Positions 11,801 to 59,299 of a DNA stretch of 64,000 bases are shown here, piece by piece (position 1 is the stretch's first letter; each line of letters begins with the position of its first letter). Made by a program: the position numbers and the translations under genes. The notes below the pieces were generated by a model, which ran no database searches, was not told the origin of the DNA, and saw nothing but the letters and a program-made list of their open reading frames with translations. The stretch comes from Selaginella moellendorffii. Lineage: Eukaryota > Plantae > Lycopodiophyta. Location: assembly GCF_000143415.4 (NCBI RefSeq), contig NW_003314357.1, positions 1 through 64,000 on the forward strand. Reading direction: 5' to 3'.

Positions 11801-14800
11801 CACCTAGTGATCTCACCTTGGCACCTTAACAGAGTTGCCAAGAGGTACTTGGTTTTCTAGACCTCCAAGTTGTTGACTATAACCCCGGGGGCATCCCCCA
11901 CACTTGGCGGTGCACCCAAGCTAGCCCTTATGGCCAAGGGTTCATAGCAACTGAGATTAGGTGTCCCCATCTCACTCACCACGACCTTGGTGCCACTTGC
12001 ACCAAAGTGTTCAAGTTAGATATGCTGAGCTTTCACACTAAGCAATCTAACCGTGCATCACGACTCCGAGGCATCCCTCGCTTGGCGGTGTGCCCAAACC
12101 AGTCTCCCCACTGAGAGTCCATGACCACCGAAATATGAGTGTCCTCATATTCCAAACCATCACCACGCCCTAGTGATTTGGGACTCGAACCCAAGCACTA
12201 GAGGGTCGGGACTCGAACCCAACCTCCGTATATGCATCTACGGACGGCATCACACAAGATGCCTGGCGTGACTCCCCACGCCGGTGCACCAACCTATTTT
12301 TAAAGCGCGCTACAGATCACAGCTTAGGAACCTAGTTCCTCCACACTGCCAAGTCCTCTCACTTGACATGTCTGTGATCATGCATGGACTCCTCCATGCT
12401 CAGCCCCATGGCCCACCCTTTTTGAAGTTATCACCTTCAACTAGGGTCTTTGTTCCCCCGACGTGCCAATCTCACTTGGCAAGTCCTCCGACCATTGTAA
12501 CATGGTTCCTGCATAAGCGTGAAAGTCCTTGACCATCGACTTTCATTCAAAGCCCTCTCTTTGAACACTCGGGAACTACTTCCCTAACCTTGATAACCTT
12601 GCCTCATGGCAAGCTTCAAGACCACGCTTCTGCTGCGCCACTCTGATTTCGCGCGTTCCATGAACCATTTACACTTGGCCTTTCTAGGTACTACGCTACC
12701 TAGAATCGTCTTTGGGAACCTTGAAGGAACTCTGTCCCTCAGCTTGCTAAGGCCTCCCCTTTCGCAAGCTTTATAGTTGCCATATAGTCTAACATGGACA
12801 ATTCCATATTTTAGACTCTCTATGGCATCACGGTTGCTAGCAACAACATCCTCGAGCACCCTCTTGATTCTCCACTCCCAGCTGGCATAACCAACCTTGG
12901 TTATGCCCTTTGATTCCTATGGTTCGGTTCTATCCCCTTACTTCTTGCTTTTTGGCTTCACACCTTTCCTTTGGTCATTCTCCTCCAGACCAGGAGGATA
13001 GTTTTGCACTTTCTATCATGCCTTAGCAAGTATTCTTAGGGATGAACCTACCCAATAGCCTAGGGAGTGGTTCCTCAATCCGGGTATGCTCACCTTATAA
13101 TCCAACACACTGGGATTACATTGTTGCTTATGGGCCTTTACATGCCCATCACTAGCCTTGCCAAAATTCCATTTTTGGCTTTGTCCAACTCGGGTAGACA
13201 GTCCTCTCCTGTCTCCGCAACCTTGGACATTTGGATAGCACCTTCTATCCATCATTCGCTAGGGACTTAGTCCCTTGGGCTTTATCCATTGCCCTCGCGA
13301 TATCAAACACCACCTTTTGGTGTTCTAGAGTGTTCGGGTGTCCCAATGATGGCTTTCTTGACAATGAGTATTTCCTTTTATGACATTGACTTACTATATC
13401 GCAACATAAGCAACTTATCCCCCGTAAGGGTATATCCGACTTCCCTATACTAGAAGTCTTGGGTAGCTACCTTCTACCCGTTTAATCAGTTATTTTGCAC
13501 CTCTTGCTTAGTTGCCTCATGGTTGTCAAGTCCTACAACTCATTGCTTGGTGCTTGCACACCTCCATCATTATCTGGGTCACCGCACTCCAACTGCATGC
13601 GCTGCCGCTTAGGCTATGCCATTCCCATTTCCATTGGGATTCCTTTGGCAAGGGGTTCTCATGAACCCACCAACATAGCCTCAAGGTATCACACCTTGGC
13701 ACATTTGGTGTCTCCACACCATCAGCTCCACGAGCCTACCTCTCTGACACTTCCCCTTCGTGTTTAAGTCTTTGCCAAGACCAACACCGCTCTTTCTCAT
13801 GCCAACCATCCGTTAGCACTACACCATAGAGGTCACACACAACTTTGTGTCAAAGTTGTTTTCTTCTGGGAACACCTTTCCCATAACTTTAGCATGGCAC
13901 ATTCTGCCATTGATGAGATACCCTCTGTTCTCATCCTTGGATCCTATGATCCCCCCCCATCCTTTGTGGGGTACAACACACCTCAGTCCAAATGCTTCCA
14001 TCAGTCCTTTTAGGACCATCCGTTGACTCTACTTGAGTCATCCAGCAGTTTTGGACTTGGTCAATCCACAGACCCGTAAGGTCCTACTTGTGAGGCACTA
14101 GCTCACTGGAATACACTTCTTGCATTCTTGTCCTACTCAAAAGCACTATTTTCACAAGTGTTACTCCGACACTTGATTTTGTTCTCTGGGGGCAACCTTT
14201 GCCCCTTAGGACTACTTGTCCATGTGATGAGAATACCAACTCATCCACTTAATACACCCCCAACTCCTTGGGTTGTTCCAGCATTTATTAGAGGTAGCCC
14301 CGGCTACCATTTCAAGGACTTGAGTCCTCTTCCGTATTTGACCTTCCACGGTCATTACCTTTGGTCTCACATTCATGAGCACCAACCTCAACTATATGAG
14401 GATAATCTTGTGACTCCTTTATTATTTTGGAGTCTCTATCTTTCCCGTGATCCCAACTTTAGTTGTTTACCACAACAACCTTAGCCAATTTGCTGAGACA
14501 AATGCTTATCCGGATCACATCCTCAACTCAATGAGGAAAACCTTGCACTGTTCCCAAGATCCCAAAGTCGTTCCATTATTGGCCCTTTTCTATCCACCAC
14601 CTCGTCTACAAGTTCACACATGAACTGTAATGGAGAGCCATGTCTTCCCGACTTGCTACTCCTCAAGGATAGGCCCACTCCTCGGACCTTCCGATGCCAA
14701 CACTAGTGGTGATATACTTGAGCACCAATAAAAGTCGGACTAAGGAACAGCTCCGATACCAAATTGTAAGCGACTAATTTTTCCATTCTACTTTAGTCAC

Positions 14801-16596
14801 TTAACCACACCTCCGACCGCTTGGAGGAGTCTCATTCACAACCTCCATAAGTCCCATTCAGGACTTGGGGCTTGCTAGCCCCGAGAATGGCATCCATGCC
14901 ACTCAACCTTTGCACTTGGTCCAAATGCTCCACGTGTCAGATCCCATGACCGACACTCAAAGGTACCACTGACATAGCAGCCCGTTACGCTAAGGCTATG
15001 CCCAATCACCTTTGCCACACTGGTAGTCCAATACCACTTGCATCACAGTCTTGGCTCCCCAAGACTAGGCAAACCATCCGTGAGTGGTCATCTCAGATCC
15101 ACTCCTTAGCATCCTTAGGATGCCCACCGACAAGGGGAATAGCCTTCCCCAATATCCCTCTGTCAGTCCCCACTAAGTCCCTTTCTGCCCCTGGCCGTGT
15201 TTGCCAACACTGCCACTGGACCGAGACCCACAGGCCCGACCGCTAAGTCCCACGGTCCTCTGGGACTTCCTCACCACACGACTGTGTCCTTGGTCACTAC
15301 CCTAGAGGACTTCTCCTCTTCCTTTCCACAGTCTGGGCCTTTGGGACAACATTTCGGAACACCGTGGCCTTACGCGAGCCACCTGGGTACTCTCCTCGCC
15401 TTCTGCCCTTGGGTGCTCTAGCCATGGGCTTAGAGCGGGTTCCGTTGAGCCACACCAGGTATCCAAGTAGGTAGTGCCACCCACACTTGGACTGGGAGCA
15501 TCGGCCAGTCGATCTCCCGGGGGAACTAGAGCCGGCTCTTGAACACTTCACCAAGCTACCCCGCTTGTCGGTCTGTGTTCACTCTAGTCTTGGACTTCCC
15601 AGTGGGCAGCTCATCACCCAACACTGGGTCCGGCCTTCCTGGGCCAAACTGGCCTTTCCTGGCCAAACTGGCTCCACTGCAGTCCTCCCCCTACTATACT
15701 TTTGGGGCTCACCAAACCCCCCAGGGTCTGGGAGACGAACGCTTTGGGCTTTCACCCTCTCAGGCTCCGGACTCGGACTCGAACTCAGACTCGGACTCGG
15801 ACTCGGACTCGGACTCGGATTCGGACTCGGACTCGGGCTCGGGCTCGGTCTCGGCCTCGGCCTCGGTCTCGGTCCCGATCTCGGTCTCGGTCTCGGTCTC
15901 AGTCCCGGTCCCGGTCTCGGTCTCGACTTCGGACTCCATCTCGGACTCCATCTCGGACTCCATCTCGGACTCCATCTCGGATCCATCTCGGGTCCATCTC
16001 GGACTCCATCTCGGGTCCATCTCGGACTCCATCTCGGACTCCATCTCGGACTCCATCTCGGGTCCATCTCGGACTCCATCTCGGACTCCATCTCGGACTC
16101 CATCTCGGGTCCATCTCGGACTCCATCTCGGACTCCATTTCGGGTCCATCTCGGGTCCACCTCGGACTCCATCTCGGACTCCATCTCGGGTCCATCTCGG
16201 ACTCCATCTCGAGTCCATCTCGGACTCCACTTCGGACTCCAACTCGAGTCCATCTCGGACTCCACTTCGGACTCCAACTCGAGTCCATCTCGGACTCCAC
16301 TTCGGACTCCAACTCGAGTCCATCTCGGACTCCACTTCGGACTCCAACTCGAGTCCATCTCGGACACTCCCACGTGTCATGTGTTGGTCCTTTTGGGTCC
16401 CTTTTTGGAGCCTTGCCTTTTGCTCGCTTCGTGCTCGTTCCTCGAGCACTTCGTTGGGAGTTCCATTCCCGCTCTTGACTTTTCAAGTCGGAGCTTTTGG
16501 TCCAAACGTGTTACGCTCTTTTGGCTCTCGCTTCGGCCACTACCATGTGGCGCCCTTCCGGCTCCACTTTGGGGCCTAGGGATTTTGTGTCTCACA
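8886..16596 (-). mobile_element. Complete non-autonomous (LARD-like) Gypsy-derived LTR retrotransposon
   Basis: TG...CA LTRs at 8886-10670 (3') and 14765-16596 (5'). TSD GTTGT at 8881-8885 / 16597-16601. PBS TGGTATCGGAGC (tRNA-iMet type) at 14750-14761(-). PPT at 10671-10684(-). The 4.1-kb interior holds only decayed gag/pol traces. Confidence 0.93.
9888..10440. repeat. LTR-internal hierarchical minisatellite (6, 12 and 35-bp units); also at ~15767-16366 and ~18885-19530
   Basis: TCGGAC/TCGGTC hexamers, TCGGACTCCATC 12-mers and CATCTCGGACTCCACTTCGGACTCCAACTCGAGTC 35-mers. Confidence 0.95.
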
Positions 16597-16781
16597 GTTG
16601 TCTCTTGTCTTCTCCCTCGCTCGCGAATGAATGAAAATTCATTCTCTTGCCTCCTCTACTTGCTCTCGATCACGCCGTTTCGACAACGGCACATGGAGAA
16701 TGTGGATTGCGCAAAGTGGTGCCGCGATCTCGCCGGATTGCAACACCGCGGGGTGTCTTTGACCCTAAACGCCTAAACGCG

Positions 16782-16888
16782 CCTAAACCCTAAACCCTAA
16801 ACCCTAAACCCTAAACCCTAAACCCTAAACCCTAAACCCTAACCCCTAAACCCTAAACCCTAAACCCTAAACCCTAAACCCTAAACCT
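16782..16888 (+). repeat. Interstitial telomeric tract (~15 CCCTAAA units) between the PLE 3' end and a broken LTR element
   Basis: Contiguous sequence with no gap on either side. Confidence 0.95.
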
Positions 16889-19800
16889 AGGTGATAACTT
16901 CAAAAAGGGTGGGCCATGGGGCCAAGCATGGAGGAGTCCATGCATGATCACAGACATGTCAAGTGAGAGGACTTGGCAGTGTGGAGGAACTAGGTTCCTA
17001 AACTGTGATCTGTAGCGCGCTTTAAAAATAGGTTGGTGCACCGGCGTGGGGAGTCACGCCAGGCATCTAGTGTGATGCCGTCCGTAGATGCATATACGGA
17101 GGTTGGGTTCGAGTCCCGACCCTCTAGTGCTTGGGTTCGAGTCCCAAATCACTAGGGCGTGGTGATGGTTTGGAATATGAGGACACTCATATTTCGGTGG
17201 TCATGGACTCTCAGTGGGGAGACTGGTTTGGGCACACCGCCAAGCGAGGGATGCCTCGGAGTCGTGATGCACGGGTAGATTGCTTAGTGTGAAAGCTCAG
17301 CATATCTAACTTGAACACTTTGGTGCAAGTGGCACCAAGGTCGTGGTGAGTGAGATGGGGACACCTAATCTCAGTTGCTATGAACCCTTGGCCGTAAAGG
17401 CTAGCTTGGGTGCACCGCCAAGTGTGGGGGATGCCCCCGGGGTTATAGTCAACAACTTGGAGGTCTAGAAAACCAAGTACCTCTTGGCAACTTGCTTAAG
17501 GTGCCAAGGTGAGATCACTAGGTGATCTTATGGCCAGAAAAGGACAAGGTCCTTGGTTGGCTAAGGAATGAAGTTCCTGGTTCAAAATGTTGAAATTGAA
17601 CTGTTTAAGGTGGTGTGGCTTGGTCGTGATAACCAAGTGGGAAGAGCACCTAAGGGAAATAAACTATGTCCGTGCGATGGCATAGTGAGTCCGAGGAAAG
17701 TAGTCTCTATAAAAGACCCATGGGAGGGTCACGAAGTTAGGCCGTGGATAGAGCCCATAGCAGAAGATGCTAAAGAGACGTACTAGGGGTGAACATCCTC
17801 CGGACTTGGCAAAGAAGAGTCTTTGCTATGGAACCGAAACAATACCTCAAGGAGGGAGGTAGAGATTCGATGTTGCTTGGTGCAACAATCAACGGATAGG
17901 AGCAAAAGATGAATGGCCAAGATAGGGCCGTGGAATCCCTTGGAAGGAATCCAAGTGACAAAGTTAGGTGAGGAACACTAATGTGTTGGACGCTAAGAAG
18001 TTGCGGGAAAGGAAGTGTTTTTCCAAGGAGGGATTCCAAATTGCTCCGATTTGGCAAAAGTGGAAGCTCCAAGGGAGGGAGCGGTAAGGTAGCCAAATGA
18101 TAGGGCGATGAACAGCCCTAGCACAAAGTATGATAACTGGAACTTTGGCACGAAATAGAAGAGAGGATGATGGTGCCCTCGAGTAGAGAACTTCCTAGGA
18201 TGGGAAGTGGAGTTGCACAAAAGGTGCAAGGCAAGGTGTCGGAGACACCTAGGAAATTGACTCCAAGAAGTCAAAATTCAAAGTTCCAAAGTGCAAAGGT
18301 TATATCGATGGAAATTGAGACTACTCGAGAAGGAGTAGTGGGATTGACTTAGAGAAGGGTCTCTAAGAGGTTTAGCGAGAACTAAACCAATAAAAGGAGA
18401 GAACCACTCCTTGTGGTCCAATCAGTCTCTAAGTTGGGGAGACTACCCTCCTTAGAGGATAGGCAAGGCATGGTGAGCCTTTGGTGTCAAACCATTGAGG
18501 CATATGCAAAAGGCATGGTGAGCCTTCAATGTCAAACCATTGACAAATATTGGCTAGGTGCCAAGGATGGAAATGGTAACACATACGAGTGTTACTTTAC
18601 AAAATGGTTTACCGTTCGATGAGGACATCGAACTTCGTCTATGGGTGGTGGAGTTGTGAGACACAAAATCCCTAGGCCCCAAAGTGGAGCCGGAAGGGCG
18701 CCACATGGTAGTGGCTGAAGCGAGAGCCAAACGAGCGTAACACGTTTGGACCAAAAGCTCCGACTTGAAAAGTCAAGAGCGGGAGTGGAACTCCCAACGA
18801 AGTGCTCGAGGAACGAGCACGAAGCAAGCAAAAGGCGAGGCTCCAAAAAGGGACCCAAAAGGACCAACACATGACACGTGGGAGTGTCCGAAATGGACTC
18901 GAGTTGGAGTCCGAAGTGGAGTCCGAGATGGACTTGAGTTGGAGTCCGAAGTGGAGTCCGAGATGGACTCGAGTTGGAGTCCGAAGTGGAGTCCGAGATG
19001 GACCCGAGTTGGAGTCCGAAGTGGAGTCCGAGGTGGACCCGAGATGGACCCGAGTTGGAGTCCGAAGTGGAGTCCGAGATGGAGTCCGAGATGGAGTCCG
19101 AGATGGAGTCCGAGGTGGACCCGAGATGGACCCGAGATGGACCCGAGTTGGAGTCCGAAGTGGAGTCCGAGATGGACCCGAGATGGAGTCCGAGATGGAG
19201 TCCGAGATGGAGTCCGAGGTGGACCCGAGATGGACCCGAAATGGAGTCCGAGATGGAGTCCGAGATGGACCCGAGATGGAGTCCGAGATGGAGTCCGAGA
19301 TGGACCCGAGATGGACCCGAGATGGAGTCCGAGATGGAGTCCGAGATGGAGTCCGAGATGGAGTCCGAAGTCGAGACCGAGACCGGGACCGAGACCGGGA
19401 CCGAGACCGAGACCGAGACCGAGATCGGGACCGAGACCGAGACTGAGCCCGAGGCCGAGACCGAGCCTGAGCCCGAGTCCGAGTCCGAGTCCGAGTCCGA
19501 GTCTGAGTCCGAGTCCGAGTCCGAGTCCGGAGCCTGAGAGGGTGAAAGCCCAAAGCGTTCGTCTCCCAGACCCTGGGGGGTTTGGTGAGCCCCAAAAGTA
19601 TAGTAGGGGGAGGACTGCAGTGGAGCCAGTTTGGCCAGGAAAGGCCAGTTTGGCCCAGGAAGGCCAGACCCAGTGCTGGGTGATGAGCTGCCCACTGGGA
19701 AGTCCAAGACTAGAGTGAACACAGACCGACAAGCGGGGTAGCTTGGTGATGTGTTCAAGAGCCGGCTCTAGTTCCCCCGGGAGATCGACTGGCCGATGCT

Positions 19801-20532
19801 CCCAGTCCAAGTGTGGGTGGCACTACCTACTTGGATACCTCGTGTGGCTCAATGGAACCCGCTCTAAGCCCATGGCTAGAGCACCCAAGGGCAGAAGGCG
19901 AGGAGAGTACCTAGGTGGCTCGCGTAAGGCCACGGTGTTCCGAAATGTTGTCCCAAAGGCCCAGACTGTGGAAAGGAAGAGGAGCAGTTCTCTGGGGTAG
20001 TGACCAAGGACACAGTCGTGTGGTGAGGAAGTCCCAGAGGACCGTGGGACTTAGTGGTCGGGCCTGTGGGTCTCGGTCCAGTGGCAGTGTTGGCAAACAC
20101 GGCCAGGGGCAGAAAGGGACTTAGTGGGGACTGACAGAGGGATATTGGGGAAGGCTATTCCCCTTGTCGGTGGGCATCCTAAGGATGCTAAGGAGTGGAT
20201 CTGAGATGACCACTCACGGATGGTTTGCCTAGTCTTGGGGAGCCAAGACTGTGATGCAAGTGGTATTGGACTACCAGTGTGGCAAAGGTGATTGGGCATG
20301 GCCTTAGCGTAACGGGCTGCTATGTCGGTGGTACCTTTGAGTGTCGGTCATGGGATCGGACACGTGGAGCACTTGGACCAAGTGCAAATGTTGAGTGGCA
20401 TGGATGCCATTCTCGGGGCTAGCAAGTCCCAAGTCCTGGATTGGACTTATGGAGGTTGTGAATGAGACTCCTCCAAGTGGTCGGAGGTGTGGTTAAGTGA
20501 CTAAAGTAGAATGGAAAATTTAGTCGCTTACA
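16889..20532 (+). mobile_element. 5'-truncated second copy of the non-autonomous LTR element (3' interior plus 3' LTR 18655-20532)
   Basis: 16889-18654 is the reverse complement of 10671-12436. PPT ATGGGTGGTGGAGT at 18641-18654. Inserted into the integrase region of the adjacent Gypsy. Confidence 0.92.
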
Positions 20533-23500
20533 CAAGCCCCCACTAGCCTTAGTCACGGCTTTTACCTGCTGACATGTTGGACATGTCTTTACATAGTCTT
20601 GGACGTCCTTAGCCATATCTGGCCAATGGTACTTCCTTTTGAGTAAGCCCATCGTCTTGGGCACTCCACCGTGTCCCGCAAGATGTCCGTCATGACACTC
20701 TTCTAAGGCCACCTTCCTTAGTTCCCCTTCTGGAACATACACCCTCGTTTGCTTGTAATAAATGAGTCCGTTGCGTTCCGCATAGCCCGTTTTCTCTTCC
20801 GTTGGCAGCTCACCTCTCTGGTGAGCTTCCCGCGCCTCTAGATTCCTCAGCAACACTTCCTGTGCTAGACCATCATTCTCATATGCTGTCCGCACATCGT
20901 CCCAGAAGGTTGCTGTTGCGCTGGATATTGCCAACTTCAAGCTCGCTTTTCGACTTAGCGCATCCGCCACGATGTTGCTCTTCCCAGGCTTGTACAGAAT
21001 TTCGCAATCAAACTCGGCCAAGGCATTGGCCCACCGACCTTGTTTCCCTCTTAGGTCGGGCTGTGACAAGAAGTGTTTCGTTGCCACATTGTCCGTGTAA
21101 ACCTTGAAGTGTCTCCCAAGGTAGTGTCGCCACTCCTTGAGTGCCTTGACCACCGCAAACAATTCCTTCTCGTGGGCAGGCCACTTCCGTTGAGCCTTGT
21201 CCAGCTTCTTCGAGAAGAACGCTACCGGATGGTTGTCTTGCTTCAGAACTGCACCCAACGCAAAGTCCGAAGCATCCGTTTCTACCTCAAAGTCCTTACC
21301 AAAATCTGGTAATGCCAATACGGGAGCCTTCCTCAACTTCCCTTTGAGGTGGACGAATGCCGCCTCGCATTCTGCTGTCCATACCATCTTCCCTTTTCCT
21401 GTTTGGTCCGTTAAGGGCAGGGCTACTCTCGAATAGTGTCTGATAAAACTTTCGATAGTAGTTGCATAGCCCCAGGAACGCCCTCAACTCATGTACATTC
21501 GATGGTCGCTCCCATTCCTGGATCGCTTGGACCTTCTCCGGGTCCACCTTGAGCCCGTCCTGGCCCACCACATGCCCGAGAAACTTTACCTCTTGTTGAG
21601 CAAAGTCACATTTGCTCTCTTTAGCATACAGCTTGTGTTCCCTTAGTTTCTCAAACACCTTCGCCAAGTGTTCGGCATGCTCTTCTAGCGTCTCGCTATA
21701 GATCAGGATGTCGTCGATATAGACGACCACGAAGTGATCCAGATAGGGTACAAAGACGTGGTTCATTAGCGCCGAAAACGTTGCTGGTGCATTACATAGC
21801 CCGAAGGGCATCACCAGAAACTCAAAGCTCCCATACCTCGTTCGACAGGTTGTCTTCTCGACATCTTCCTCGGCTACCCTGATCTGGTAGTATCCTGACC
21901 TTAGGTCAATCCTCGAGAAGTATTTTGCCTTTCCCAACCTATCGAACAGGTCCTCAATCCTTGGCAAAGGGTACTTGTTCTTCTTTGTATACTTGTTGAG
22001 CAAGCGGTAGTCTATGCACATGCGCATAGATCCATCTTTCTTTTTCACAAATAACACCGGCGCCCCATACGGTGACTTGCTCAACCTAACATACCCTTTG
22101 TCCACCAACTCCTCTAGTTGGCACTTGAGCTCCTTGAGTTCTTTTTCGTTCAAACGATAAGGGGGACGAACCACTGCCTCAGCACCCTCGACCAGCTCAA
22201 TCTTATGTTCTATCGGTCGTGCTGGGGGCAGCCCCGCCGGTAGCTCCTCCGGCATGGTATCCTGGAATTGGTCCAACACCCGTTGGATCACTAAAGGTGC
22301 TTCTTCCATTCCTGTCTTTCTGTCACTCTTCATCGAGAGTAAGCACAAAAAGGCCGCCTTAGTTCCCTTAGTGAGTTGTCCTCTCGTGGACACCAGGTTT
22401 AAGCAGGAATCTTTGGCCTTGCTTTGCCCTACCTTTAGATCTTGGGCCTCCACCCTAGATCTTCTTCCTTGGGCATTCGCCAGTACCACAAGGTTTCTAC
22501 CTTGTCCATGCAGGGCTACCACGAATCGATTGAACCAGTCCATTCCGAAGATCACGTCAAATCCCGCCATGTCCAACACGGTGAAGTCCATGTCCACCTT
22601 CCAAGTCCCCACTTCGACTCTCGCTTGTCGAAGTACCTCATCGGTGCTTTGGCTACCTTGAACAAACTCTATAGTCCTTGGTTCGCCTAGCCGCTGCACC
22701 GTTAGTCCGGCTTGCCAGACTATGTCTGCAGCCACAAAATTATCCGAAGCACCCGTGTCAATAAGGATTTTAACAAAGCTACCTCCGAGCTTCCCTCGGA
22801 GGGCTAGTAGATGTCGCGAACGACTCTCTACCAAAGTTGCTCGTGTAATGAGTAACTTTGAGTTAGGGGCTGGATCACATACCTCTGTTTGGACTTCACC
22901 CGACTTGATGGCCATATTGGCTCTGGCCTTCTTCGGGTAGGGACATTCCCTCGAGAAGTGTCCCGCTTCACCGCAGTTGTAGCATACGTTGTTTCCCACG
23001 CTACTATATGACTTGACCTTCTTATCTGTGGGTTTGTCTCTTTTCGCCTGACTCCCCCACGTACTCGCTCGCTGGCCACCGGATCTGCCTTTCCGGAACC
23101 CCGAGGACTCATTCTTAGAGAAACTCTTCTTGAATTTACCTCTGCTAAACGTTCCCCTTGGTTTGGCCCCTTTGCTAAACGTGGATCCCGACCCCGTCGT
23201 GTTCCCCTTTCGCAGGTTATCGTTGAAATGCACCTTGATGGCCGCATCCAACGCTTCTTTGTAGTTGGTCGGGTTCCACCGCATTACTTCACCGCGAGCC
23301 CAGGTTTGCAAACCTGATATGAAGGCATGGAACGCATCCATATCCCCCATGTCCGTGACAAGTATCCTCTTTGCCATAAACCCATTCACATACTCCTGAA
23401 TGGTTCCGGTCTGCTTCAGCCTACTCAGCTCGTCCCTTAGATGCAGAGTAGCATTCGGAGGAACGTAAGTTGCGCGGATCCTCGCCTTCATCATTTCCCA

Positions 23501-24082
23501 AGTGGCCACCGGTCCTTCGTTGGCCTCTGTCGTTCTCCACCAAGACTTGGCATTATCTGCCAAGTATGGTTTTGCACATGGGACCTTCTCCGAGCTTGGT
23601 AATCGCAACGCTCGGAAGTAGTCCTCCATATCGTAGAACCAATCCTCCACCACCTTATAGTCATTCACTCCCTTGAAGACTGGTGGGGGCTTTGGTTTGT
23701 ACTTGGGAACTGCCTGAGGGACCGATTCCACTTCGGTCTGTTCGACCTTGTCTGGTTTTGCCTCAGTCCCTGCCGAAGGGTCCGCACCTTCTGCGCTGCC
23801 AGCATCCGCAGTCTTTCGCTTTTTCTTCCGCTTCTCGTCACGCTTTAGCTTGCGTACGAGAGTCTCTAGCAGGGCATTGGTCTGTGCCAATTGTCCTTCT
23901 AGAACATCCAATCGAGCCTTGGACGACCGAACCTCACCACCAGACTCCTGTTTGGAAGTTGCCTCACTGGAGTCCTCCTCATGCAGGGATTCCTCATCCA
24001 TCGCCTCCTGTTCGACCGGAGGCTCCAGCTCTGGAGGAGGTTCCGTCTCTGCCTGGGTTTGCTTACGTCCTGCCCTTGCCAT
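20533..24082 (-). pseudogene. Gag-Pol polyprotein with one +1 frameshift at ~21445-21448, cut after the integrase HHCC
   Basis: [57 protein letters not shown]...GHGG...CPTCQQVK. Confidence 0.92.
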
Positions 24083-25290
24083 CTCCCAGCAATCCGCCTC
24101 TATCCTTCGCTAGAACTGAGGAAGAGGCTCCGATACCAGATTGTAAGCCACAAATTTTTCCTTTCCAATTTGCCAGCTTACCTCGTCTATCCGTCCAACA
24201 CTGCCTTGGCTTTTGCTAAGTTCCCTTGCCAAGGTTTTTGCCTATGGTAACAGCTCCTACTTGGTTTCAGCTACTCACTGCACGAGCAACGGAGTGTTAG
24301 CCATCCTTCCACGGATTCCCAAATCACTCTCAATCCCCCTCCCCGGGTTAGACTGGACTTAAGGTTCGGCTACACTCCCCGCAAGCACAAGCAGCCAAGC
24401 ACACCAAGCTTCCAGGTTCCTAACATCCCTTGGTACCACAAGACTTGATCATGGGACCCTCTAAATCCCAAGTCTTGAATGCAACACTTGCTTCGGGACG
24501 CCGGGGCGAAACACCGTGGCCTAGCGGCCCGGTATGGGTACCTCTCGCCCCCCACTTCCATCCTGAAGGAAGGCCCAAGCCCCTAGGAAGGGCGAGGACC
24601 AATGAGCCGCATGGTACTCAAGTGGGGCACCACTCCACATGAGCCGGGAGCACCGCAATCGGTTTCCCTTTCGGGAGTGGGAGCTGCTCTTGAGCACTTC
24701 CTTGGATGGCCCCTCCGGCACCAGCCAAGTCCATGCTCACTCCCACCCAAGGCCCCTCGGTCCCAGTCCCAACCTCAAGTCGGTTTGGAAGCCCAACTGG
24801 AGAGTCCCTTCAAAACTGGTTCCTGGGCCTCTCTATCCCTACTATACTTTTGGAACCCCCTACAGCCCCCCCCCCCCTGGGAGACGCACGCTTTGGGCTT
24901 TCACCCCTTGACCCGTATTAGTATTTGGACTTAGTCTCTGGCTCGATCTCGGACCCAATTTCGGATCCGACTTCGGATTCGGGTTCGGACTCGATCACGG
25001 ACTCGATCTCGGACCCGATCTCGGACCCGACCTCGGACTCGACCTCGGACTCGGTCTCGGACCCAATTTCGGATCTCGGACTCCGTCTCGAACTCGGTCT
25101 CGAACTCGGACTCGAACTCGGTCCCCGAGTCGGTCTCGGACTCGATTCCGGACTCTATCTCGAACTCGGTCCTAGAGTCGGTCTTGGACTCGATCCTCGA
25201 CTTGGTCCCATCCGATAAACTCTTTGTCATTTCGGTCAAGCTTTTGGGGATCCTTTAGCCTACGACATCTCGGGGAGTCGGTTCCTTACA
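20533..25290 (-). mobile_element. Ty3/Gypsy (chromovirus-like) retrotransposon: 5' LTR 24142-25290, PBS 24127-24138, gag-pol truncated in the integrase
   Basis: LTR with TGTAAG...CTTACA termini, PBS TGGTATCGGAGC, domain order Gag-PR-RT-RH-IN. Confidence 0.93.
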
Positions 25291-28285
25291 CATATGCTCC
25301 CCATGGACTTATGAAAGCTGTTTTATGTTGATCTTTGACAGCTATGTGTACTTGATTGTAGCCTGAAAAACCGTCAACAAATTAGTACATTTCATGACTG
25401 GCTACAGCATCAAGTATTTCATCTGAAAATGGTATGGGAAAGTCATTTAGTTCACACAAATGTGTAATTTCCCATTTTTCTTGGGGACAATGACTAAAGG
25501 TGATAGCTATTGGGCATTTTGTATTGGATATATAAATCCTACTTCAAGGAGTTTGTTGATTTCAACTTTTACTTTTTCAGCGAATGTTGGATTCATCCAG
25601 TAAGCAATTTGTTTAATGGGTTGAATGCCTAGAAGTAATTCAATTCGATGTGTACATAAATTAAGTGGTATACCTTTGGGGTCTTTATATGACCAAGCAA
25701 AGACATCTTTATACTTAGTAAGGAGCGCAGTAGCATTAAGTTTAAAAGTTTTGTCGAGTTGTGTAGCTATTAAAACGTTTTGTGGGTTTGAGGGAATCCC
25801 TAGATTTAATTCTTCAATGTCTTCATTGATATTGACATGAAGTTTTAAGTCTTGATTTTCGGTGGTGAGAACTAATTCATCTTGTATATCTAAGTGATAT
25901 TCTATAGTTTGTAGTTGTTCAGGTTAAAGCACTAGTCTTGCTTTTTGTATGGTGGTTTTTGTTAGTTGTTTTGAATCATCATAGTCTTGACACTTGGATA
26001 TAGGAAGTATCCTGTTGAGGTCAATTTCTTGGATTGCCTTAAGTTTAGGATATGCTTCAAATAATTTATTCAAGATCGTCTAAGCCTTTTTCCCAATTGT
26101 ATTTTTGAACTTGTGTTGGTCGGAAACTTCTTGAGATTTTCTTGCTTGTCGATGTTGATATTTTAGTTTGTCCTTTTCGGGATTGTATACATATCTCATG
26201 CTCCATCCAATATTGTGTAGAAACAGCTTTGTTAAGCCAAGGTCTACCTAGCAAGATTTCGTAAGAAGATTCTTCAATCGCCATTTTTAACACAACAAAG
26301 TTAACTTTAAATTTATGTCCTTTGACTGTCATAGAGACATCACAGATTATGCCTGCTGGTCTGACAACTCTTTGATCAGCCATGCGTACAATGAAGGGTG
26401 CAGTTTGTATATTGCTCAGTCCTAAAGCTTTGCATAGTGAAAACCTTCATCAAGAATAGCTCTTTCAATATGATTTTTGCTAATATGTATGTTTATACAA
26501 GGTACATTATCATTATAATCACCAGGTTGGATTCTTTTAGTATGTTCTAGTTGTGTTGGTTGAGATTGGTGTTTTTCTTGTGTTCGAGCTTCAGGGATCC
26601 TTCGATTACATACCTTTAAGATTTGGTCTTTCATATATAGTGCTATTTGCAATATTTGTTAGAGGGTTAAAGTAATTCCTTGCTGTAATATGTACTTGGC
26701 AATGGTTGTATGCTCATCTTGAGTAAAGCTTAATACTTAAGTTTAGTCATCTTGATTGTATATTTGATCATTAATAATTTCAGGATCTTTGTTTTGAAGC
26801 TTTTGTTGAATGGTTTTAAGTATTTTCTTACTCTTTTTCCATTTGGTATTCTTGATTTCTAATGCTTGATCACTTTCATCTTGTTCTTCATAATTATCAG
26901 GTTGTTGACATTCATATTGTGTTCTGGTGATTGCCAAGACTTCTGGTTCTTTAGTCATTAGTTGTTCTTTATCTTCTATATCAACTTCTACTTGGACTGC
27001 TCGTGCTGCTGGTGGTCTTCCAGCAGGAGCTTGATTGACTCTTTGGTTTTGTGGATTATATTGTTGTCTAATTTGAGTGTCTTCTAGTTGATTTTGTCTT
27101 GGTTGATAATTTTGTTGTGATGTTTGATTGTTTTAATTGTTATATTGCCTTTGTTGGCTTTTGTTTTTATTGTTCCCTTGTGGAAGTTGATAATTGTTTA
27201 GTTGTCAATTGTATTGTTGTTAGTTGTAATTGCCTCTATAACTGTTTTGTCCTTGACTATAGTTTTGATTTCATAGGGGATTATATCCACGATTATATCC
27301 TGGATTATATTGTTGATTATCTTGGTAATAATAGTTTCTTGGTAGTCTTTGATCCTGGTTGTTGTTTCCTTGATAATTTTGTCGTGGTGGTCCTCGTTAA
27401 ACATTTTCCACTCTTGAAACTTCGGTGGTATTTTTATATTGACAATTCTTAGCTATATGTCTTTCTCTATCACAAATCTGACATTTGGGTAAATGGAATT
27501 TACAGTCTGAAACAGAATGTCCTTCATTTTTGCATTTTGTACAAAAGACTCCTTGTTTAAACTCGGTTGAAGCTAACTTCTTCAATACATGTCTAATATC
27601 TTTACCTTGTGTCTATTTCTTTTTGGTTTTGATTAGTATTTCTTCCTCTTCATCATCTGAGTCATCATTAGTATGAGAAGATTCACCTTTAGTGAATTGC
27701 TTAAACTGTTTCTCAAGTTTTAAGATTCCTTGAGATAGTGAATCAATACTTTCTTCATCAGGTGTATCAGCCAAGGCTATCATGTTGTGATAGGCTTCTC
27801 GTAATTCTTGTATGTAAGACAAACTCTTGCCTTTGTCAGTGATTAAATCTTTACATTTCTTTGCATATAATTTAAATCGTCTAGTATAGTCTTGAATTCC
27901 TTCCTTTGGTCACTTTTTATATTCTTAATTTGCTCATAATGCTCCTCCAGTGTTCTTCCGGCTGGGAATTGTTCCTTGAATTGTTCAAGTTTCTTGTCAT
28001 GTGATACAAAATCCTCTAGAGTATTATACCACTCAAGAGCTTATCTTTTAAGTGTGTATGTGAAAAGTATGGCTTGATGCTGTTCTTGATTGTTCATCTT
28101 GACAATTTGGTTGAATTGTTTTACATGTAATTCCGAATCTTTTGACTTACTTCCTGTGAAAATCAAATATGTAATCATGCTTCCAATTGTACTCATCAGG
28201 TTGATGATTGCCATTGGTGGTTGTAGACTTTGTTGGTTGAGTTGTTGTTCTAGTGAGTTTGGATTTGAGTAAAACTCTGGTGCTG
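25291..28285 (-). mobile_element. Decayed AT-rich non-chromovirus Gypsy (gag-PR-RT), host of two insertions; gag continues at 34648-~35000
   Basis: DGFSGYNQVHIAVKDQHKTAFISPWG (RT), YEILLGRPWL (PR), two CCHC knuckles. The gag frame rejoins across the 28286-34647 insertion (EAKYTA|PEFYSN). Confidence 0.8.
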
Positions 28286-31200
28286 TGTAGAACTAAGGGA
28301 ATATTCCATCTGCTGCCTCATCAGTATTAAGGTCACGAGGGAGGGGAAGTCCACTAAGGGGGGGAAAAAACAGTCGATCAATTGTATGTAAGGGAAGGGA
28401 AGAAGAGAATAAAGGATGCCTTAACGAAGAGGTCCTTGGCAAAGTGCCGTCCCCACCACCAGCCCCCATCTCAGTTTCTACTCCTCCAAGAATGAGTGGT
28501 GCTGGCGGATCTGGAGGAGCAGCACCGCCGCCGCCGCCAATTCCTCCTCTGCCAGGACGGCATTTTACACACATGCGGTATCCTTCTTTCTCGCCCATCG
28601 CGGGCAATGATGCGGACGCACATTTCAATTCCTTTGAGACTGTTGGCATCGCCAACCAAGAAGCTGATGAAGCCGATCGCCTTCGGTTCTTCCCTGCTAC
28701 ACTCCAAGACGCTACTCTGGAGTGGTATCTCCAAGCCCAGCGTTCTGCACCAGCCAGTATTGCGACCTGGGACCTGCTTCGATCAGCCTTTCTCACTGCT
28801 TTCCGACCCGTGGGATTCGCACAGCGAGTTAGTGAGGAACTTAATTACATTCGATTGCTGCCAAACGAAAGCTTACAAAGTTTTATCATCTGGTTTCGGC
28901 GACTAGTAGCTAAAAAAGACCCTCCTCCCAGTGAGGACGATCAGGTTCGCTTCTTCACGAACGGCCTGCCTCCTGAATAGGCTTTCTTCACGAAGGGCAA
29001 GACCCCCACAACACTTGCTGAGGCTATTTCCTCGGATTCCAGTTGGGAGCAAGCCCGTGTGAGCATGGCTCGCTTCCAGTAGCCTTTCTACTCCGTTCCT
29101 TCAGTGCTTGGCGGCCCACCAGTGATCCCGCCAACCTTTCCAAACATCAGCAGCATCACAGCCATATTCTTCGCTCACTGACCCAGCAAGCTTACCTTTT
29201 CCTGGAACTGTCGATTACAGCCACCTCCAGCGGCATATACTTCCTGCCGTGGCTACTTCCTCTTCAGCTCTGCCACAGTCGCAAGGTGATGACTTGGAAA
29301 CACTCACCAAGAAAATGTCCGAGCTTCAGCTTAACTGGATTCGGAGTCCAGACACCTCCTCAGCCTGTTACTGAACGTGAGAATATCTGGTGTACTCGTT
29401 GCAAGGGATATGGACATTATCCCAGCGAATACCCAAGTCCTGCACCAGCTCGAGTCAAGTGCCAGCACTGCAGACGAAATAATCACAGATCAGAGCACTG
29501 CATATATAAACCCGCTACCTCAGCTCAGCCAGCTCCTCGCTTGCCTGCACGTCCCAGCTACCACGTCCAGCTTCTTCAAGATCCATTGCCACCTCTGGTT
29601 CTACAAGGTTACACACCCGATCTAGTACACGTTTATGCAGCAGCTCCAGCACGAATGAGTAATGTACCTGGAAGGGGTCGAGCTCGACGTCCAATCATCT
29701 GCTTTCGTTGCAGACAACCCGGCCATATCGCTCCCGAGTGTCCGAATGCACGAGCACCAGTTGAGTATCAACCCGTCTGCGGCATCTGTAACACGCAAGG
29801 TCTTCATGCCCAAGACGACTGCCCTCGCCATGGCCCATGCGGCTCAAACTGCACACGCAATGGCACCCAGTTCCTCCCTACGGCTACTCATACGCCAAGC
29901 ACGGCCCTGCAACACCACAGCTCACCCATGCCGCTCCTGCCTTTGCTCCAAGTGCGTACCCTAATGTGGCAGTTGCTCCAAGACCCGCAATCCAGTTTGA
30001 AGCGCTTCCCTCTCCGCCCTCGCGAGATAATTCTGGAAATGCCACCTCATTCAGCCACGCTTCACCTAGCGATCAAGAGGATTCAGTTAGCGCCGACAAG
30101 AAAAAGAAATATCGCCGTGTTCTCAATCTGGACGACTTTTTGGGGGATCTGGAGCACCAAACGCCACAAATTTCTTTTAGCCAGCTCCTCCATGCTGCTC
30201 CAGAGCTCCACAAGGTGGTTTCCTCTGCTCTCCGTGGGCATTGAGAAATTGTCGTGAACTGCGTGTGGCCCCTCTTCGTCGACATGTCTGCTCCCACGAT
30301 TAACGTGGACATCCGTGGTCACATCTCTTCTGCTACCATCCATGGTGGCAGTGGCGTCAACCTGATGCCGCATGAAACTGCAGCTCACCTGGATCTTCCA
30401 GCTCCTGTTCCTGTTCACTTTCACCTGCATGGCGGATCAATGCCGCGTTCAGCCGCTTGGCAGGATGAACGATGGCAATCTGACTTATCCACTCCTTCTT
30501 GGGAGACCCTGGCTTCTCCAAGCTCGCGCACGCCATGACTGGGCTACTGGCTTCTTGGAGTAGGTGATGGCAATTTTTCCCGCAAACTCCAGGTTCACTT
30601 TCAGCAGCACCCTGAAGCTAGTTTCAAGGTTGAATCAAACGACTCGGATTCCTCCAACGATTAAAATGATCCAGATGAGGATGCTCCTGCTCTTTCTACT
30701 GAACCTTCCCTTACATCCCAGACTACAGCTGAGGTTCAAGCTTGGCTTTTCTGCGGCTCAGTGACGGTGGAGCCGTCCCCACCTTTGCACCAGGTTCTCG
30801 TTGCTGATCACAATGCTCCAGATGAGTGTGGCAATGTGGAGATCTTCTCAAGATACTGCTGTTCCTCCCTCAGTGGAGGAATGGACCCTGGACGATACAC
30901 TCGCGCTTGACGATGTGGTGCGCCTCGTGCAGAGCACCTTGTTTCCGGCTCCCGCCACCTTTTCTACGGGATCGTGACCAGCCTGGCCGATTTTTCTTCT
31001 TGATTTCACTAAGCAGCTCGCCCTACGGTTGCTTAGCAGATCTTACCTTACCTGCGAACTACATCGACCGTGCTGTTCTTTCCAGCCTTGGCCATCCGAT
31101 CAGTGCTCTTCCTGATCAACCTGCTCCAGTCAATTTTGGCGGAGAAGAGTTAGAGTTTCTGGGATTTCTCATGGATATCCCATACACTTTTCTTGGAAAG

Positions 31201-53633: not shown

Positions 53634-56600
53634 TCCTCTCGCCAAAAACCTCACTCTCTCTCTCTCCTCAGGGGTTATCCTCACCTCAGCTATGTAGAGT
53701 CCACACTGGGGGAGCTGACGGCACATGTTGCGCCACGTGGAAGCACCAACCAGCCGTTCGATTCCCCGGTCAAAACAAACAAAAATTTAGGGTTTGGGGT
53801 CTTGGTCTTCTGCTAAAAGGAACACTGGGGTTTTTTATTAGAGCACAGTCGCGTTATATGCCCAGGTTTGCCAAAAACCAGATCCGAGTGTTTATAGTCT
53901 CTCCTGGTTCTTTCTTTTGCTTGATAGCCTTTGATACAACAGAGATCAAGCTGCTGGTGCATCATATGCAATGATAGTGTCTAACATCCTTTGTTAGGTC
54001 TTATTGCGTCAAAATTCAAGCTATTCCACTACGCTCATATGATCACTACATTTGTTCTCAGTATGATCCCATTCTGAGGTGTACAAGTATCTAAGAATCG
54101 TCTGGGAGTACAAGATTTTACTGGAGAGTTTCCGTGACGCTGAGGGAGAGGTATTGGACAGAGTTTATAGTTGTTGGAAGTCAAGCAAACTTCAAGAACG
54201 TATAGGTAGCCCTTTGGTCTTCAGTTGAGGATCGATCCTACTACCAAGGTTGATGTTAAATTCCAGCATTTGAGGAGGTTTGTTCCAGGTCTATGGGGCG
54301 GTATATTTTTAGTTTCACAAGGAGTCTCAGTGGGAGTCTACCAGACAATCCAGGGAAAAATCTGTGGATTTCCTAGAATGGAATATGCTTTTTACTTGAT
54401 CTTGTGACCTTGGCTAGCCTCCATCGCCATCTTCGTTCTCTTTCCCATCTTCTAGCTCGTCGTTTCCATCTCTCAGCCTCTGGAGCTTTCTTCCCAAACT
54501 TGAGAGGTCCAGAAACCAAATTAACAGTCTGAGAAGATGTATCTGTATGAATGATTATCTTCATACCTAGGCATACGGATGTTGTATTCAACATATGCAA
54601 TGATAATTGGTGTTTATGCAGGCTTCATAGTTGGATACTATGATCCTCTATTGGGCCTTATTACGTCAAATTTTCCTGAAAGCAGAGGCTGTGAGCGTGG
54701 TGGAATGTTTCTTGAAGGTTAAAATATGATCAAGGACTACAGTGAAATTTTTTTATTTCAAGAAATTTATGCATTTGTATTGGAAAGCTTAAAATCTATA
54801 TATTTTAACTCCACTACATTTGTTCCCTAGCATTGTTTCAAGGATCAATATGACAAGTTAAGGCCATGAAAGCTTTGGTCTATAGAATGAGACTTAGGTA
54901 TTCCTATAAGTTTCTGGGATTACAAAGGTGAGTTTTGGAGAGGTATTGGATAGGGCTTATAGTTGTTGGATGGATAGCAAACTTTAAGCACTATAAGACA
55001 CTTTAGATTTCACAAGGAATTTTATGGTAGACAAAGTATGATACTACTTTAGTTGAATTGATCAATTAATGAATTTTGATTGATTTATGATTAATTGATG
55101 ATTGTGTTAATTATTGGTAATGATATTAATATTATTTAATTTCTTTTTGGAAAATTATAGTTATAAAACTTGAGGGTTCAAAACTACAACGAAAATCTGA
55201 TACAAAGAGAGGGAGTGCCACTAAAGAGTCCACACAACAGTTGAATGAATATTTATTTACAATGGAGAAAAAAAAAAGCTTGCAAACTTGTTTGCATAAT
55301 CTTGTCAGACACTAAGATCCCACCCGCGTGTGGCTCCCACATGCACTCCCACCTGCCCACCAGCATCTTAGATTACACCCAGTGTGCACCCTAATTGTTT
55401 CCCATATAGTTAGTGGCCATTTAGCCATATTGTGCCCCCATCCTGTTCCCAACACTTCGCTAAATTTCATGATGCTAATTGACCTAAAAAATTCAAGTAT
55501 AACAGTAGTACATCAAGTAAAAAATCAATTTAACTTCATATTAATTTAAGAAAATCATTTAAGATCCACTATGACTTGATGAGGTGCAAGAATTCCATGA
55601 AAATGGCATTTTTGTCCAACAAAAATCATAATCCTAACTACTCAAAGTTAATCAGGTATTTTCTTTGATAACAAAATATAATTACTAACTTCTTGACATA
55701 ATGAATATAGAAAACATGTGAAACATCTACTAAACTTGCTGAATTTACACCAAAGTTAGGACTTAGAAGTAGACCAGGTCCAGTGTTGCTTTTGCAATTT
55801 TTTGGTCAAACAATTTATGAATGGTTTGATTATATGCAGATTATATATTGGGATTTCTTGTCATGGTTAACATGATTTGACAAGAAAAAATTCATTATTT
55901 CCTCATAAGATTTTAGTAGATATTCAATATTGGGTGATTCATATGATCCAATGAGATTTCATATCAAATTATATTTATAATAAGCATATACTAATTGTGA
56001 GAAGGAATAAATCAATTGGTAAACCTTCTTGTTAAAATTATTTTCTAACTATGTAGGATATTAACAATCTATATAAAAAGTATTTGCTATCAACTTATTA
56101 ACTACATAAAAATGCTCAATCAAACTATTTTTTATCTTGTTAGCATGAGGGAAATTCCATATAGCAGAACCTACATATCTATTATATAAAAATAAAAATA
56201 AATATAAAATTCAAAATATTGATTCACTTACTAATTTTATCCTTCCATTCATTTTGAGAATACTTAAAATGCTTCTTCATTTTAAAAATCTACCTCAAAA
56301 TGTTTGATAAATTGTTTAATCTCAACTTGTATAATAGTATTATCATAGAAAGTTGTGTGAATTGAATGATATATAATATTTCTAAAATATTTCGCTATTT
56401 CCTTCATAATTTTCTATAATTTCACCTTAAAAATAATATATTTGAGTCAATTACTCTTTATGTGCCAAGTATATAATAGAATTTAGAAATTGAATGTAGC
56501 TCTATTTGAAAGCATAAAAAATTATATTATAGCATATTTAATTAATTATTTTATAGGATTAATCTCTGTTTCAGCATCATCAATCAATCACACATAGTTA

Positions 56601-59299
56601 ATAATCTGGCATATGTTTTAAAACTTGATTCTTAACAATTATCATCCAATTCTTCATATTTTCTCTTTTCTCACTAAAAGTTAAAACTCTTCAACTAAAA
56701 TACCATTTCCATGATAATCAAAAGTAAACATGAAAACTATAAATTATTAAAGATTATCAACTTTAAAATAAATGAAAGCTTTATTTTATATTGATTAGTT
56801 CCAAAAGCTGTATCAAAGGCTACAATGAACGAAGTGATGCAATTTAGTTCCAAAGCATAGAAGAAAGAAATGGATCACATACTTGAGGGCATGAAGAGGT
56901 AGATGAAAAACAACACTATAATCTTTACAAGGTTCACCATCTTTTGGAAATATCAGATAGTTTGAATCTCAATGGTAAGATAACTTTTACCTTAATCACC
57001 TTTTTGATGAAAAAACACTTCCTCAGGATTTGTGTTCTTCCAAATATATACACTCTATGCATCTTTGTGCATGGCATTTTATGCCAATACAAAAATTACA
57101 CTCTTATTTGGAAATAAATATACTCCCCATCAAAGGATGATTAGATAGTTCACCAACTTACTACTAAAGTTCATGAAAGGTATTAATTTACTAGTTATTA
57201 CAAAGATCATAGTTTTATTCAAAACCATGAATATGAAAAACTATTTGATGGTGTGATTATTAAAGTGAGAAACATTAACAAGTCTTAAGTAAATTCAATA
57301 AAAAAATGTTTGTAAATCCTATATATAATCTTCTTCAGATCAAGCTATATAATATCTTGTCATCAAAGTTGAAAGACAAAGTTATTAGGCTTTTTAGAGG
57401 TGGTATAATTGTCCATAAGCAACAAAAGAAAACATTTCAAAATATCAGAAAAAATTTACAATATTGAAACAAGGAGTGTAAATTGCCTTGATTATAATCA
57501 ATTATGAGGCTCCTCTCACACTTACATGCAATCTTAGAACCTAGATCAGATGATTTATTTATCATCCACCAAATTTTGAAGCACTTCATTTGGAAGTTAT
57601 GACAAAGATAACTCACTTAATAATTAAATTTTTGAAATATGTATATAAATTTGAGTAGGAAAATATCCATCAAAATATTTATTATGAGCAGGAAATCCAA
57701 TTGAAGACTATATTAGAGGTAAAATAATATATTTTATATACTAATATATGAGCTTTGACTATGAAGATATCCATTGAAATGTGTAGCATTAGCAAAAAAC
57801 GTTATTAAAGATTGCAATAAAGGTAATTTACATTGAATAAAGTTTAGATGAAATAAATTTTGAGAAGGAAGATATTACTCAAATTATCCTTTAGGAATGG
57901 GGGCAATAGGCAAGAATGGTCATAGAGTTAAAAGTTCCTCAAGAGGATCTCCCACTATTGAAGGGTCTCCTATAGTGTTTGGACTAAGTAAGTTGCTTCA
58001 TCATTGCTTTCTTTTGTTTGTCACTTCATTGGAGGAGACCATCAGATCCCTTGGGAGTAAATTTGTGATTTTTTCCTGTAGTTATTGCAACTTTTTTCCT
58101 GCCAACTTGTACTTCCAGAATGTCTTCATTGGCATCACTAATATCTTGTGTCTCAAATACAATGTCTGGATCTGAATCTACCATTGTGTTTGTCTCTGGA
58201 AAAAAGAGAAACAAAAGTCAATCATAAAAGGACAAATGAACTTACCATAGCTTGGTGACTTGTTTGCTATTGTGGAACCCATGAATGTATTAACTTAATA
58301 GCTACTTAGAACATTAACTCTCTATTGCATCATCCATACTTATATCTCATTGTAGAGGCTTTTGTCGAATGCATGAGGAAGATTAAGCATCTTTAGTAAA
58401 CTCATTGTTAAAGTAGGATGGTTTTTTTGATGGGATGTTGCTCTCATAGTCATTAATCTACTTTTACTTATTCACAAGCTCATCCTATTGTGACTCACAT
58501 TACTTTGGTGTGTGATGAAATCTTTGTCAACGTAAGATGTTAGAAATTTATCGCCACTTCTTTGGTCCTTTTATCGATTTAGTATAGCCACCACATTTTT
58601 TTCCATCCTCATTATTAATAGACCATTTTCCTTTCTATTCACCATTTAAAGTGAAACTAAGTTTAGAGATTAGAAAACAAACACAAATTATATTTCTTGT
58701 ATCTCTGAAATATTCATTACTCTATCAAAGAGTTAATTTTTAGAGGAGGCAGTAATAACAAAGTTGTGAAAAGGAAATTTCCAATTTGCCCACCATAAAG
58801 TCCTTGCTGTTGCAAAAATATATTCAAAACAAAGTGGGAAAAAATTGGAAAAAAATACTTAACTTGAAGAATCAAAGCTAACTTACATTGCAGAAATGCT
58901 TAGAACGAATTCAATCATTGGATTGAATGTAGAAGTGCCAGGCTAAAAGCCATTGTAAAAACTTACTAAAAAAAAAAAAACCAAAGAAAAAATGAGTAAT
59001 ATTTGAATCAAGATTACATTTGAAATAGATCCCATGCTAACACTAACCTCTCCTCCTTGGACATTAAGAAAAAACAAGAAAAACTCTAAAATTACAAAAT
59101 TTTATACTTACATAAGTTTGAGATATTGATGCACTAAAATATGAGCTAAATTGTGACTATGGATGAAGTGATAGTCCACATAGTCCAATGGACTCTAAAG
59201 CGTCACGAACCCCAAAACCCAGGATGGTCGCACAAAGACCACCTCCTTTTCCCCGTCCCCCTCCTCGGCCTCCTCCCCCTAAATGTGCGGGCAGACAGA

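Follow-up and report, generated by a model that had tools for sequence, protein, structure and literature searches.

How did a short tract of plant-type telomere repeats come to abut the interior of a broken retrotransposon, well inside the left end of a contig? The question is raised by the first 64,000 nucleotides of contig NW_003314357.1 from the spikemoss Selaginella moellendorffii (assembly GCF_000143415.4, forward strand), the whole of which is called the window here. At 16888/16889 a CCCTAAA tract joins the middle of a long terminal repeat (LTR) element. On the outer side of the tract lies a Penelope-like element (PLE), itself followed outward by further telomere repeats. A first-pass annotation had proposed that a terminal deletion was healed by de novo telomere addition and that the short telomere then served as a landing pad for the PLE. 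This proposal is supported by our analysis, and every prediction that it makes at the level of the sequence holds: the orientation of the repeats, truncations explained by one cut, a 1-nt overlap at the junction, and a PLE tail in register with the tract. We consider healing followed by PLE docking to be the likely history of this chromosome end.

The telomere tract and its junction with a truncated nest of retroelements

The tract, parsed by hand and with a script, is 126 bp long (16763–16888) and contains 14 perfect heptamers. Read in order, it consists of CCCTAAA CGCCTAAA CGCGCCTAAA (16763–16787), seven perfect units, CCCTAA, CCCCTAAA, five perfect units and a final CCT (16886–16888), so that the unit adjoining the junction is one C short. 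About 15 CCCTAAA units had been counted previously. The array is real, but about 3 of its roughly 17 units belong to the tail of the PLE, which leaves about 14.4 units of plain telomere. The array at 16763–16888 is not a chance feature, and past position 17000 a script found merely four isolated CCCTAAA and one TTTAGGG in the rest of the window. Followed from the tip inward, the C-rich strand runs 5' to 3', and the 3' end of the G-strand of the tract pointed left. This orientation means that the tract capped the right-hand, centromere-side DNA and not the left-hand segment.

Runs of N are confined to 252–1188, 2066–2165 and 6918–7017. As they occur only in the first 7 kb or so, the sequence from 7018 to 64000 is continuous and includes the junction between tract and LTR element, which had indeed been described as free of gaps. 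From 16889 rightward, the DNA is the reverse complement of an intact LTR copy elsewhere in the window, read from its position 12436 leftward (BLAST pairs 9880–12436 with 19471–16889). Both BLAST and an alignment of the junction thus place the breakpoint at the equivalent of 12436, the position given by the first-pass annotation. The junction is read directly as CCCTAAA/GGTGATAAC. Base 16889 (A; T on the G-strand) fits the telomere unit and the LTR element alike, an overlap of 1 nt. On the G-strand, the healed end is GTTATCACC-T-AGG-TTTAGGG, where the intact copy has GTTATCACC-T-TCAACTAGGGTC. Such a 1-nt overlap fits healing by telomerase, at which it is typical.

The LTR element at the junction has lost about 4160 bp and keeps the 3' half of its interior and its 3' LTR. 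No second copy of intact positions 12437–14763 was found in the window by BLAST. This broken element has as its host a gypsy element (gypsy element 1), which it interrupts in the integrase zinc domain (flank ...YHWPDMAKDVQDYVKTCPTCQQVK...) and whose integrase core and 3' LTR were not found anywhere in the window. Gypsy element 1 in turn interrupts the reverse transcriptase (RT) of an AT-rich, degenerate gypsy-type element, whose RT ends with ...KTAFISPWGAYV at the LTR boundary, and the rest of the pol gene and the 3' LTR of that element were likewise not found in the window. Checked element by element, all three nested retroelements therefore lack their distal parts, as had been noticed. The missing parts of all three would lie to the left of 16889, so that one cut accounts for the three losses. 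The locus thus combines the features expected of a healing junction, namely a G-strand oriented outward, a demonstrable truncation whose distal remainder is absent from the window, and the 1-nt overlap. The AT-rich element, with 33% GC against about 50% GC around it, contains numerous stop codons; either it is old and has mutated heavily from C to T, or it belongs to an unusually AT-rich lineage.

The presence of a telomere-like CTAGGG at 12441–12446 of the intact copy was also confirmed. It lies in G-strand orientation, 5 nt past the equivalent of the breakpoint, and the broken copy has not kept it. On the relevant strand, the 7.7-kb LTR element carries seven TAGGG in all; the probability that a breakpoint placed at random is followed by the start of one within 10 nt is about 0.9%, a figure that is suggestive. 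The broken copy is 2% diverged from the intact copy, whose CTAGGG may therefore not mirror the sequence before the break. A possible role of the native CCCTAG as the seed for telomerase was tested; the motif lies distal to the junction, and one simple step cannot yield the present junction from it.

The Penelope-like element and the LTR element inserted into it

To the left of the tract lies a unit that is predicted to be a 5'-truncated, endonuclease-less, telomere-associated PLE. This element, called copy 2, is made of 7250–8885 and 16602–16787, split by a young LTR insertion, and matches a copy 1 located at 2456–4285. The two copies are 99.1% identical in their body and 95.8% identical in their 165-bp tail, where the 4.2% difference consists entirely of transitions. 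Their last 25 nt form a degenerate telomere-like tail that is the same in both copies and in register with the perfect repeats of the tract. The open frame of copy 2 begins within the RT (QVYACLFLC...RYIDDGVGIW), and just the C-terminal half of this enzyme is kept. The first base is the same in both copies and falls between RT motif B and the YIDD motif, and the 247 residues that they encode (2456–3201 and 7250–7995) are identical. This common truncation point argues for a duplication, or for a master element that was already truncated, over two independent truncations.

A local Pfam scan detected no family in the open reading frames (ORFs) of the PLE. Downstream of the RYIDD motif there is a conserved domain. 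Two relatives obtained by word search, 46% and 49% identical to the PLE ORF, carry the precomputed family PF26215, and so do the nearest clusters in the Atlas, which come from rotifers. No GIY-YIG endonuclease follows the RT: the ORF stops at 3201, and neither the ORF at 3527–3982 nor its counterpart in copy 2 has a Pfam family. Each copy has a type I hammerhead near its 3' end, in line with the canonical type I hammerheads reported in Selaginella elements (PMC4209133). The 160 nt after the hammerhead fold into hairpins (z = −3.3) and leave the C-rich, telomere-like end unpaired. The sense strand of the element is on the C-strand, and its hammerhead and 3' tail face the tract. This is the arrangement expected if a G-overhang primed reverse transcription. 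PLEs have been described at spikemoss telomeres (PMC12477314), and those without endonuclease attach to G-rich overhangs, aided by reverse-complement telomeric repeats beside their hammerheads (PMC8557442). Short stretches of telomere at the 3' side of such elements have been read as docking on short or uncapped ends (PMC5537684).

The tail of copy 1 (4253–4285) is followed by about one telomere unit (TCCTAAAC) and then by non-telomeric DNA. The element could have docked on an end that was almost naked, or the contig could stem from a different chromosome end and have been scaffolded into this one. The contig that carries copy 1 is bounded by the gaps 2066–2165 and 6918–7017. Its part from 4286 to 6917 is a GC-rich 2.6 kb with tandem repeats of 10–50 bp and an open frame of 332 residues running into the gap; no Pfam match was found in 4286–6917, and the Atlas gave no usable match for the ORF at 5920–6915.

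The LTR element that splits copy 2 landed 3 nt past the last base of the hammerhead motif and is the copy against which the broken one was compared. A purine-rich tract adjoins its 3' LTR, and the placement of this tract and of the primer-binding site shows that its sense strand is the minus strand. Its interior is 4.1 kb long with a longest ORF of 118 residues; as no interior ORF exceeds this length, the element is non-autonomous. Paired LTRs, a target-site duplication, a primer-binding site and a polypurine tract, with no gag-pol of its own, make it a non-autonomous Ty3/gypsy derivative. It shares its primer-binding site with gypsy element 1, and the two have similar LTR termini (TGTAAG-type) and a 12-mer array. 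The autonomous gypsy element 1 is probably its helper. Outside the internal 12-mer array, the two LTRs of the intact element show 0 mismatches over 1219 aligned bp, and the BLAST identity of 96.35% between them reflects a change in copy number within that array. Given this identity outside the array, the insertion into copy 2 is very young and was the last event at the locus. In the interior of both the broken and the intact LTR copies (17103–17162 and 12200–12260), we also observed a 28-bp tandem with a core resembling a tRNA T-arm (GGTTCGAGTCCC); ARAGORN found no tRNA in this stretch.

The positions of all features are collected in the table. CCCTAAA repeats open the window, and its four arrays, found with Tandem Repeats Finder (TRF) and a script, share one orientation, with CCCTAAA on the plus strand. 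Because copy 1 and everything else to the left of 7018 lie in separately scaffolded contigs, the order of these parts is uncertain. The outermost sequence, from 45 to 250, is a mosaic in which a piece of about 75 bp from the 5' region of the PLE and two other short non-telomeric pieces are interspersed among CCCTAAA runs. Relative to the start of copies 1 and 2, the PLE piece begins 13 nt further inside the element. The mosaic is followed by a gap of 937 N. At the other end of the window, inward of the PPR and Exo70 genes, 54000–64000 is a long AT-rich stretch (26–37% GC) with few ORFs. No exact match for four ORFs of the window was found in the protein collection.

Table. Features of the 64,000-nt window, from the outer end inward.
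Feature	Position	Strand	Remarks
Telomere array	1–251	+	Patchy; TRF
Telomere array	1189–2455	+	TRF
Type I hammerhead of PLE copy 1	4046–4088	+	Rfam RF00163, 40.5 bits (gathering score 34)
Telomere array, about 33 CCCTAAA units	7018–7249	+	TRF; distal to PLE copy 2; start of gap-free contig, N gap ends at 7017
PLE copy 2, body	7250–8885	+	5'-truncated within RT; frame open from 7252
Type I hammerhead of PLE copy 2	8840–8882	+	Rfam RF00163, 40.5 bits (gathering score 34)
Target-site duplication GTTGT, 5 bp	8881–8885 and 16597–16601
Intact non-autonomous LTR element	8886–16596	-	Inside PLE copy 2; reference for the broken copy
LTRs of the intact element	8886–10670 and 14765–16596		TG..CA ends
Primer-binding site of the intact element	14750–14761	-	TGGTATCGGAGC, initiator-Met type
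PLE copy 2, structured 3' region	16602–16762	+	Downstream of hammerhead; aligns to 4092–4252 of copy 1
Telomere array as called by TRF	16762–16887	+	Period 7, 17.4 copies, score 209
Degenerate telomere-complementary tail of the PLE, 25 bp	16763–16787	+	CCCTAAA CGCCTAAA CGCGCCTAAA; identical to 4253–4277 of copy 1
Plain telomere tract, 101 bp, about 14.4 units	16788–16888	+	Former chromosome cap; one variant pair (CCCTAA CCCCTAAA)
Broken LTR element, 3' half of interior	16889–18654	+	Interior 98.4% identical to the intact copy
3' LTR of the broken element	18655–20532	+	LTR parts 97.9–98.0% identical to the intact copy
Gypsy element 1	20533–25292	-	gag, protease, RT, RNase H, Integrase_H2C2 (Pfam); ORFs 21296–24082 and 20419–21387
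Primer-binding site of gypsy element 1	24127–24138	-
5' LTR of gypsy element 1	24142 to about 25292		TGTAAG...CTTACA ends
AT-rich degenerate gypsy-type element	About 25293–28317	-	Two CCHC gag knuckles, protease remnant, start of RT
Further gypsy element	28.3–34.5 kb		Inward of the nest
Host genes	20–34 kb in		Inward of the nest; protein kinase, PPR protein, Exo70

Course of events and competing explanations

The truncation, the orientation, the nesting, the sequence of the junction, the features of the PLE and the relative order of insertions can be read directly in the window, and the following course of events, which we regard as likely, would bring them together. The chromosome arm would have broken or eroded inside the nest of three retroelements. 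Roughly 9 kb or more of distal DNA would have been lost in all, comprising at least 4.2 kb of the LTR element and the 3' parts of the two gypsy elements. The exposed end of the G-strand (...GTTATCACCT, ...CACCT) would then have been extended with TTTAGGG, most likely by telomerase, starting from a 1-nt overlap used as seed and with an imperfect first repeat. We infer telomerase as the agent, as we do the length of the telomere at the next step. This new telomere may have measured about 100 bp (about 14 units) when the RNA of the endonuclease-less PLE annealed to the G-overhang by its C-rich tail. The overhang would have primed reverse transcription, placing the element on the C-strand with its 3' end inward and burying the short tract. 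Telomerase would subsequently have rebuilt a telomere on the 5' end of the PLE, now seen at 7018–7249. Much later, the non-autonomous LTR element, still active, would have jumped into the PLE.

Several points weigh against this history. A simple alignment to the telomerase template would give one G more than the first added unit contains, a discrepancy that may reflect a misalignment in the first round of synthesis or a later loss of one base. The common truncation point of copies 1 and 2 hints that at least one of them arose by duplication and not by fresh retrotransposition. Within about 2 kb of the junction all sequence is repetitive, so the junction could be real and yet wrongly placed, and it is documented by the sequence of a single assembly. 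The tract may have shrunk once buried, which makes about 100 bp an estimate of its length at docking. Finally, telomerase addition and microhomology-primed copying of another chromosome end are indistinguishable by sequence alone.

This last point concerns the explanation that competes best with de novo healing, namely break-induced replication. The broken end of the LTR element would have invaded an internal telomere tract of another chromosome end through a few bases of homology and copied tract, PLE and distal telomere all at once, without de novo addition. This predicts an identical orientation and a junction with an equally short overlap. Moreover, the two copies in the window, 99% identical and sharing one 5' truncation point, indicate that such units do get duplicated. 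Break-induced acquisition has been proposed for the Athena arrays of rotifers (PMC2861651) and for the MoTeR arrays of Magnaporthe (PMC7367193), and in a study of wheat, capture is named beside de novo addition as another possibility (PMC12581906). However, homology of about 1 nt would have to suffice for the invasion, no donor is known, and the classic signature of healing is just such a short tract that stops at a truncated sequence. We consider copying from another end to be unlikely here.

The tract could also have been templated entirely by the retroelement, with no part played by telomerase. An element RNA with a long read-through (CCCUAAA)n 3' end would in this case have annealed to the raw break and healed it directly. 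Tail and tract are in register, and copy 1, whose tail meets non-telomeric DNA after about one extra unit, makes docking on near-naked ends seem possible. Copy 1, however, sits in a contig bounded by gaps. In both copies the element-specific tail amounts to three degenerate units, and the 14 additional clean units are more simply understood as a pre-existing telomere. Direct healing by the PLE is thus quite unlikely.

An assembly artefact would mean that the junction, or its place in the scaffold, results from a chimeric read or from a misjoin driven by repeats. In favour of this, three N gaps interrupt the first 7 kb of the scaffold, and the junction is flanked on all sides by multi-copy repeats. 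Against it, the junction lies in gap-free sequence, and a single long read would exceed the 126-bp tract in length. With its 2% difference from the intact copy, the broken copy represents a separate locus. A single cut coherently explains three truncations, and the orientation is that expected at a left chromosome end. An artefact is accordingly very unlikely. Least probable is an interstitial event: interstitial telomere tracts are common in plants, but joining of an uncapped telomere to the break is ruled out by the repeat orientation, which is wrong for a telomere of the left segment (the 3' end of the G-strand points left), and insertion of the repeats or of the PLE at an internal double-strand break is contradicted by the other half of the LTR element, which does not flank the insert, the orientation being contrary here too and telomere repeats being present on the far side of the PLE in the same contig.

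Healing by de novo telomere addition followed by PLE docking thus remains the history that we favour. It can be taken further in a joint reading, which we put forward tentatively and hold to be rather doubtful as a whole. The tract of about 100 bp would represent the true length of the newborn telomere, the PLE would act as a second-line cap that prefers nascent or critically short telomeres after healing, and the TAGGG beyond the breakpoint would have helped to recruit telomerase.

Comparison with known systems and significance

The closest known counterparts are Athena of bdelloid rotifers and Coprina of fungi, protists and plants, including S. moellendorffii (Gladyshev and Arkhipova 2007, as represented in the papers that cite it, PMC8557442, PMC12477314 and PMC5537684). 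As described there, these elements form head-to-tail units with the 3' end inward, a 3' hammerhead and a reverse-complement telomere tail, as in the present case. They share further with it the short stretches of telomere between units, the 5'-truncated copies and the lack of an endonuclease. Compared with Athena and Coprina through these citing papers, the locus differs in that the innermost tract sits on a truncated nest of three LTR elements, so that the founding healing event is visible, and in that its PLE copy keeps just the C-terminal half of the RT.

In the telomeres of Magnaporthe oryzae, truncated sequences are healed through seeds of 1–4 nt and telomeric retroelements (MoTeR) are then acquired and bury short tracts, with break-induced replication as a discussed alternative (PMC7367193). 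That system is a fungus with TTAGGG repeats and elements of non-LTR type, in which events were followed in real time, whereas the present one is an old, fixed scar in a plant and involves a PLE. Healing of terminal deficiencies by HeT-A and TART in Drosophila also places a retroelement on a broken end with its 3' end inward, but Drosophila has no telomerase and the element joins the break directly, whereas here a tract of telomerase type lies between break and element (PMC5537684). Broken plant chromosomes, from the healing described by McClintock to wheat ditelosomics (PMC12581906), are likewise capped by plant-type repeats at breaks in gypsy-rich DNA. Those cases concern experimental or cytogenetic stocks, with no extension by a retroelement, in contrast to the naturally fixed end described here at base resolution.

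Both the mechanisms involved and chains of PLEs at such plant telomeres have already been published; this locus is a clear instance of them and leaves the knowledge of healing or of these elements unchanged. What it offers is a case of the full series in a land plant, resolved to the base and naturally fixed: a break, a new telomere, capping by a retroelement and a renewed telomere. The terminal deletion is evidenced by a nest of three elements that have all been cut on one side, and the locus allows the events at one chromosome end to be put in a dated order. It also lends support to the view, already published, that PLEs without endonuclease dock on short or deprotected telomeres.

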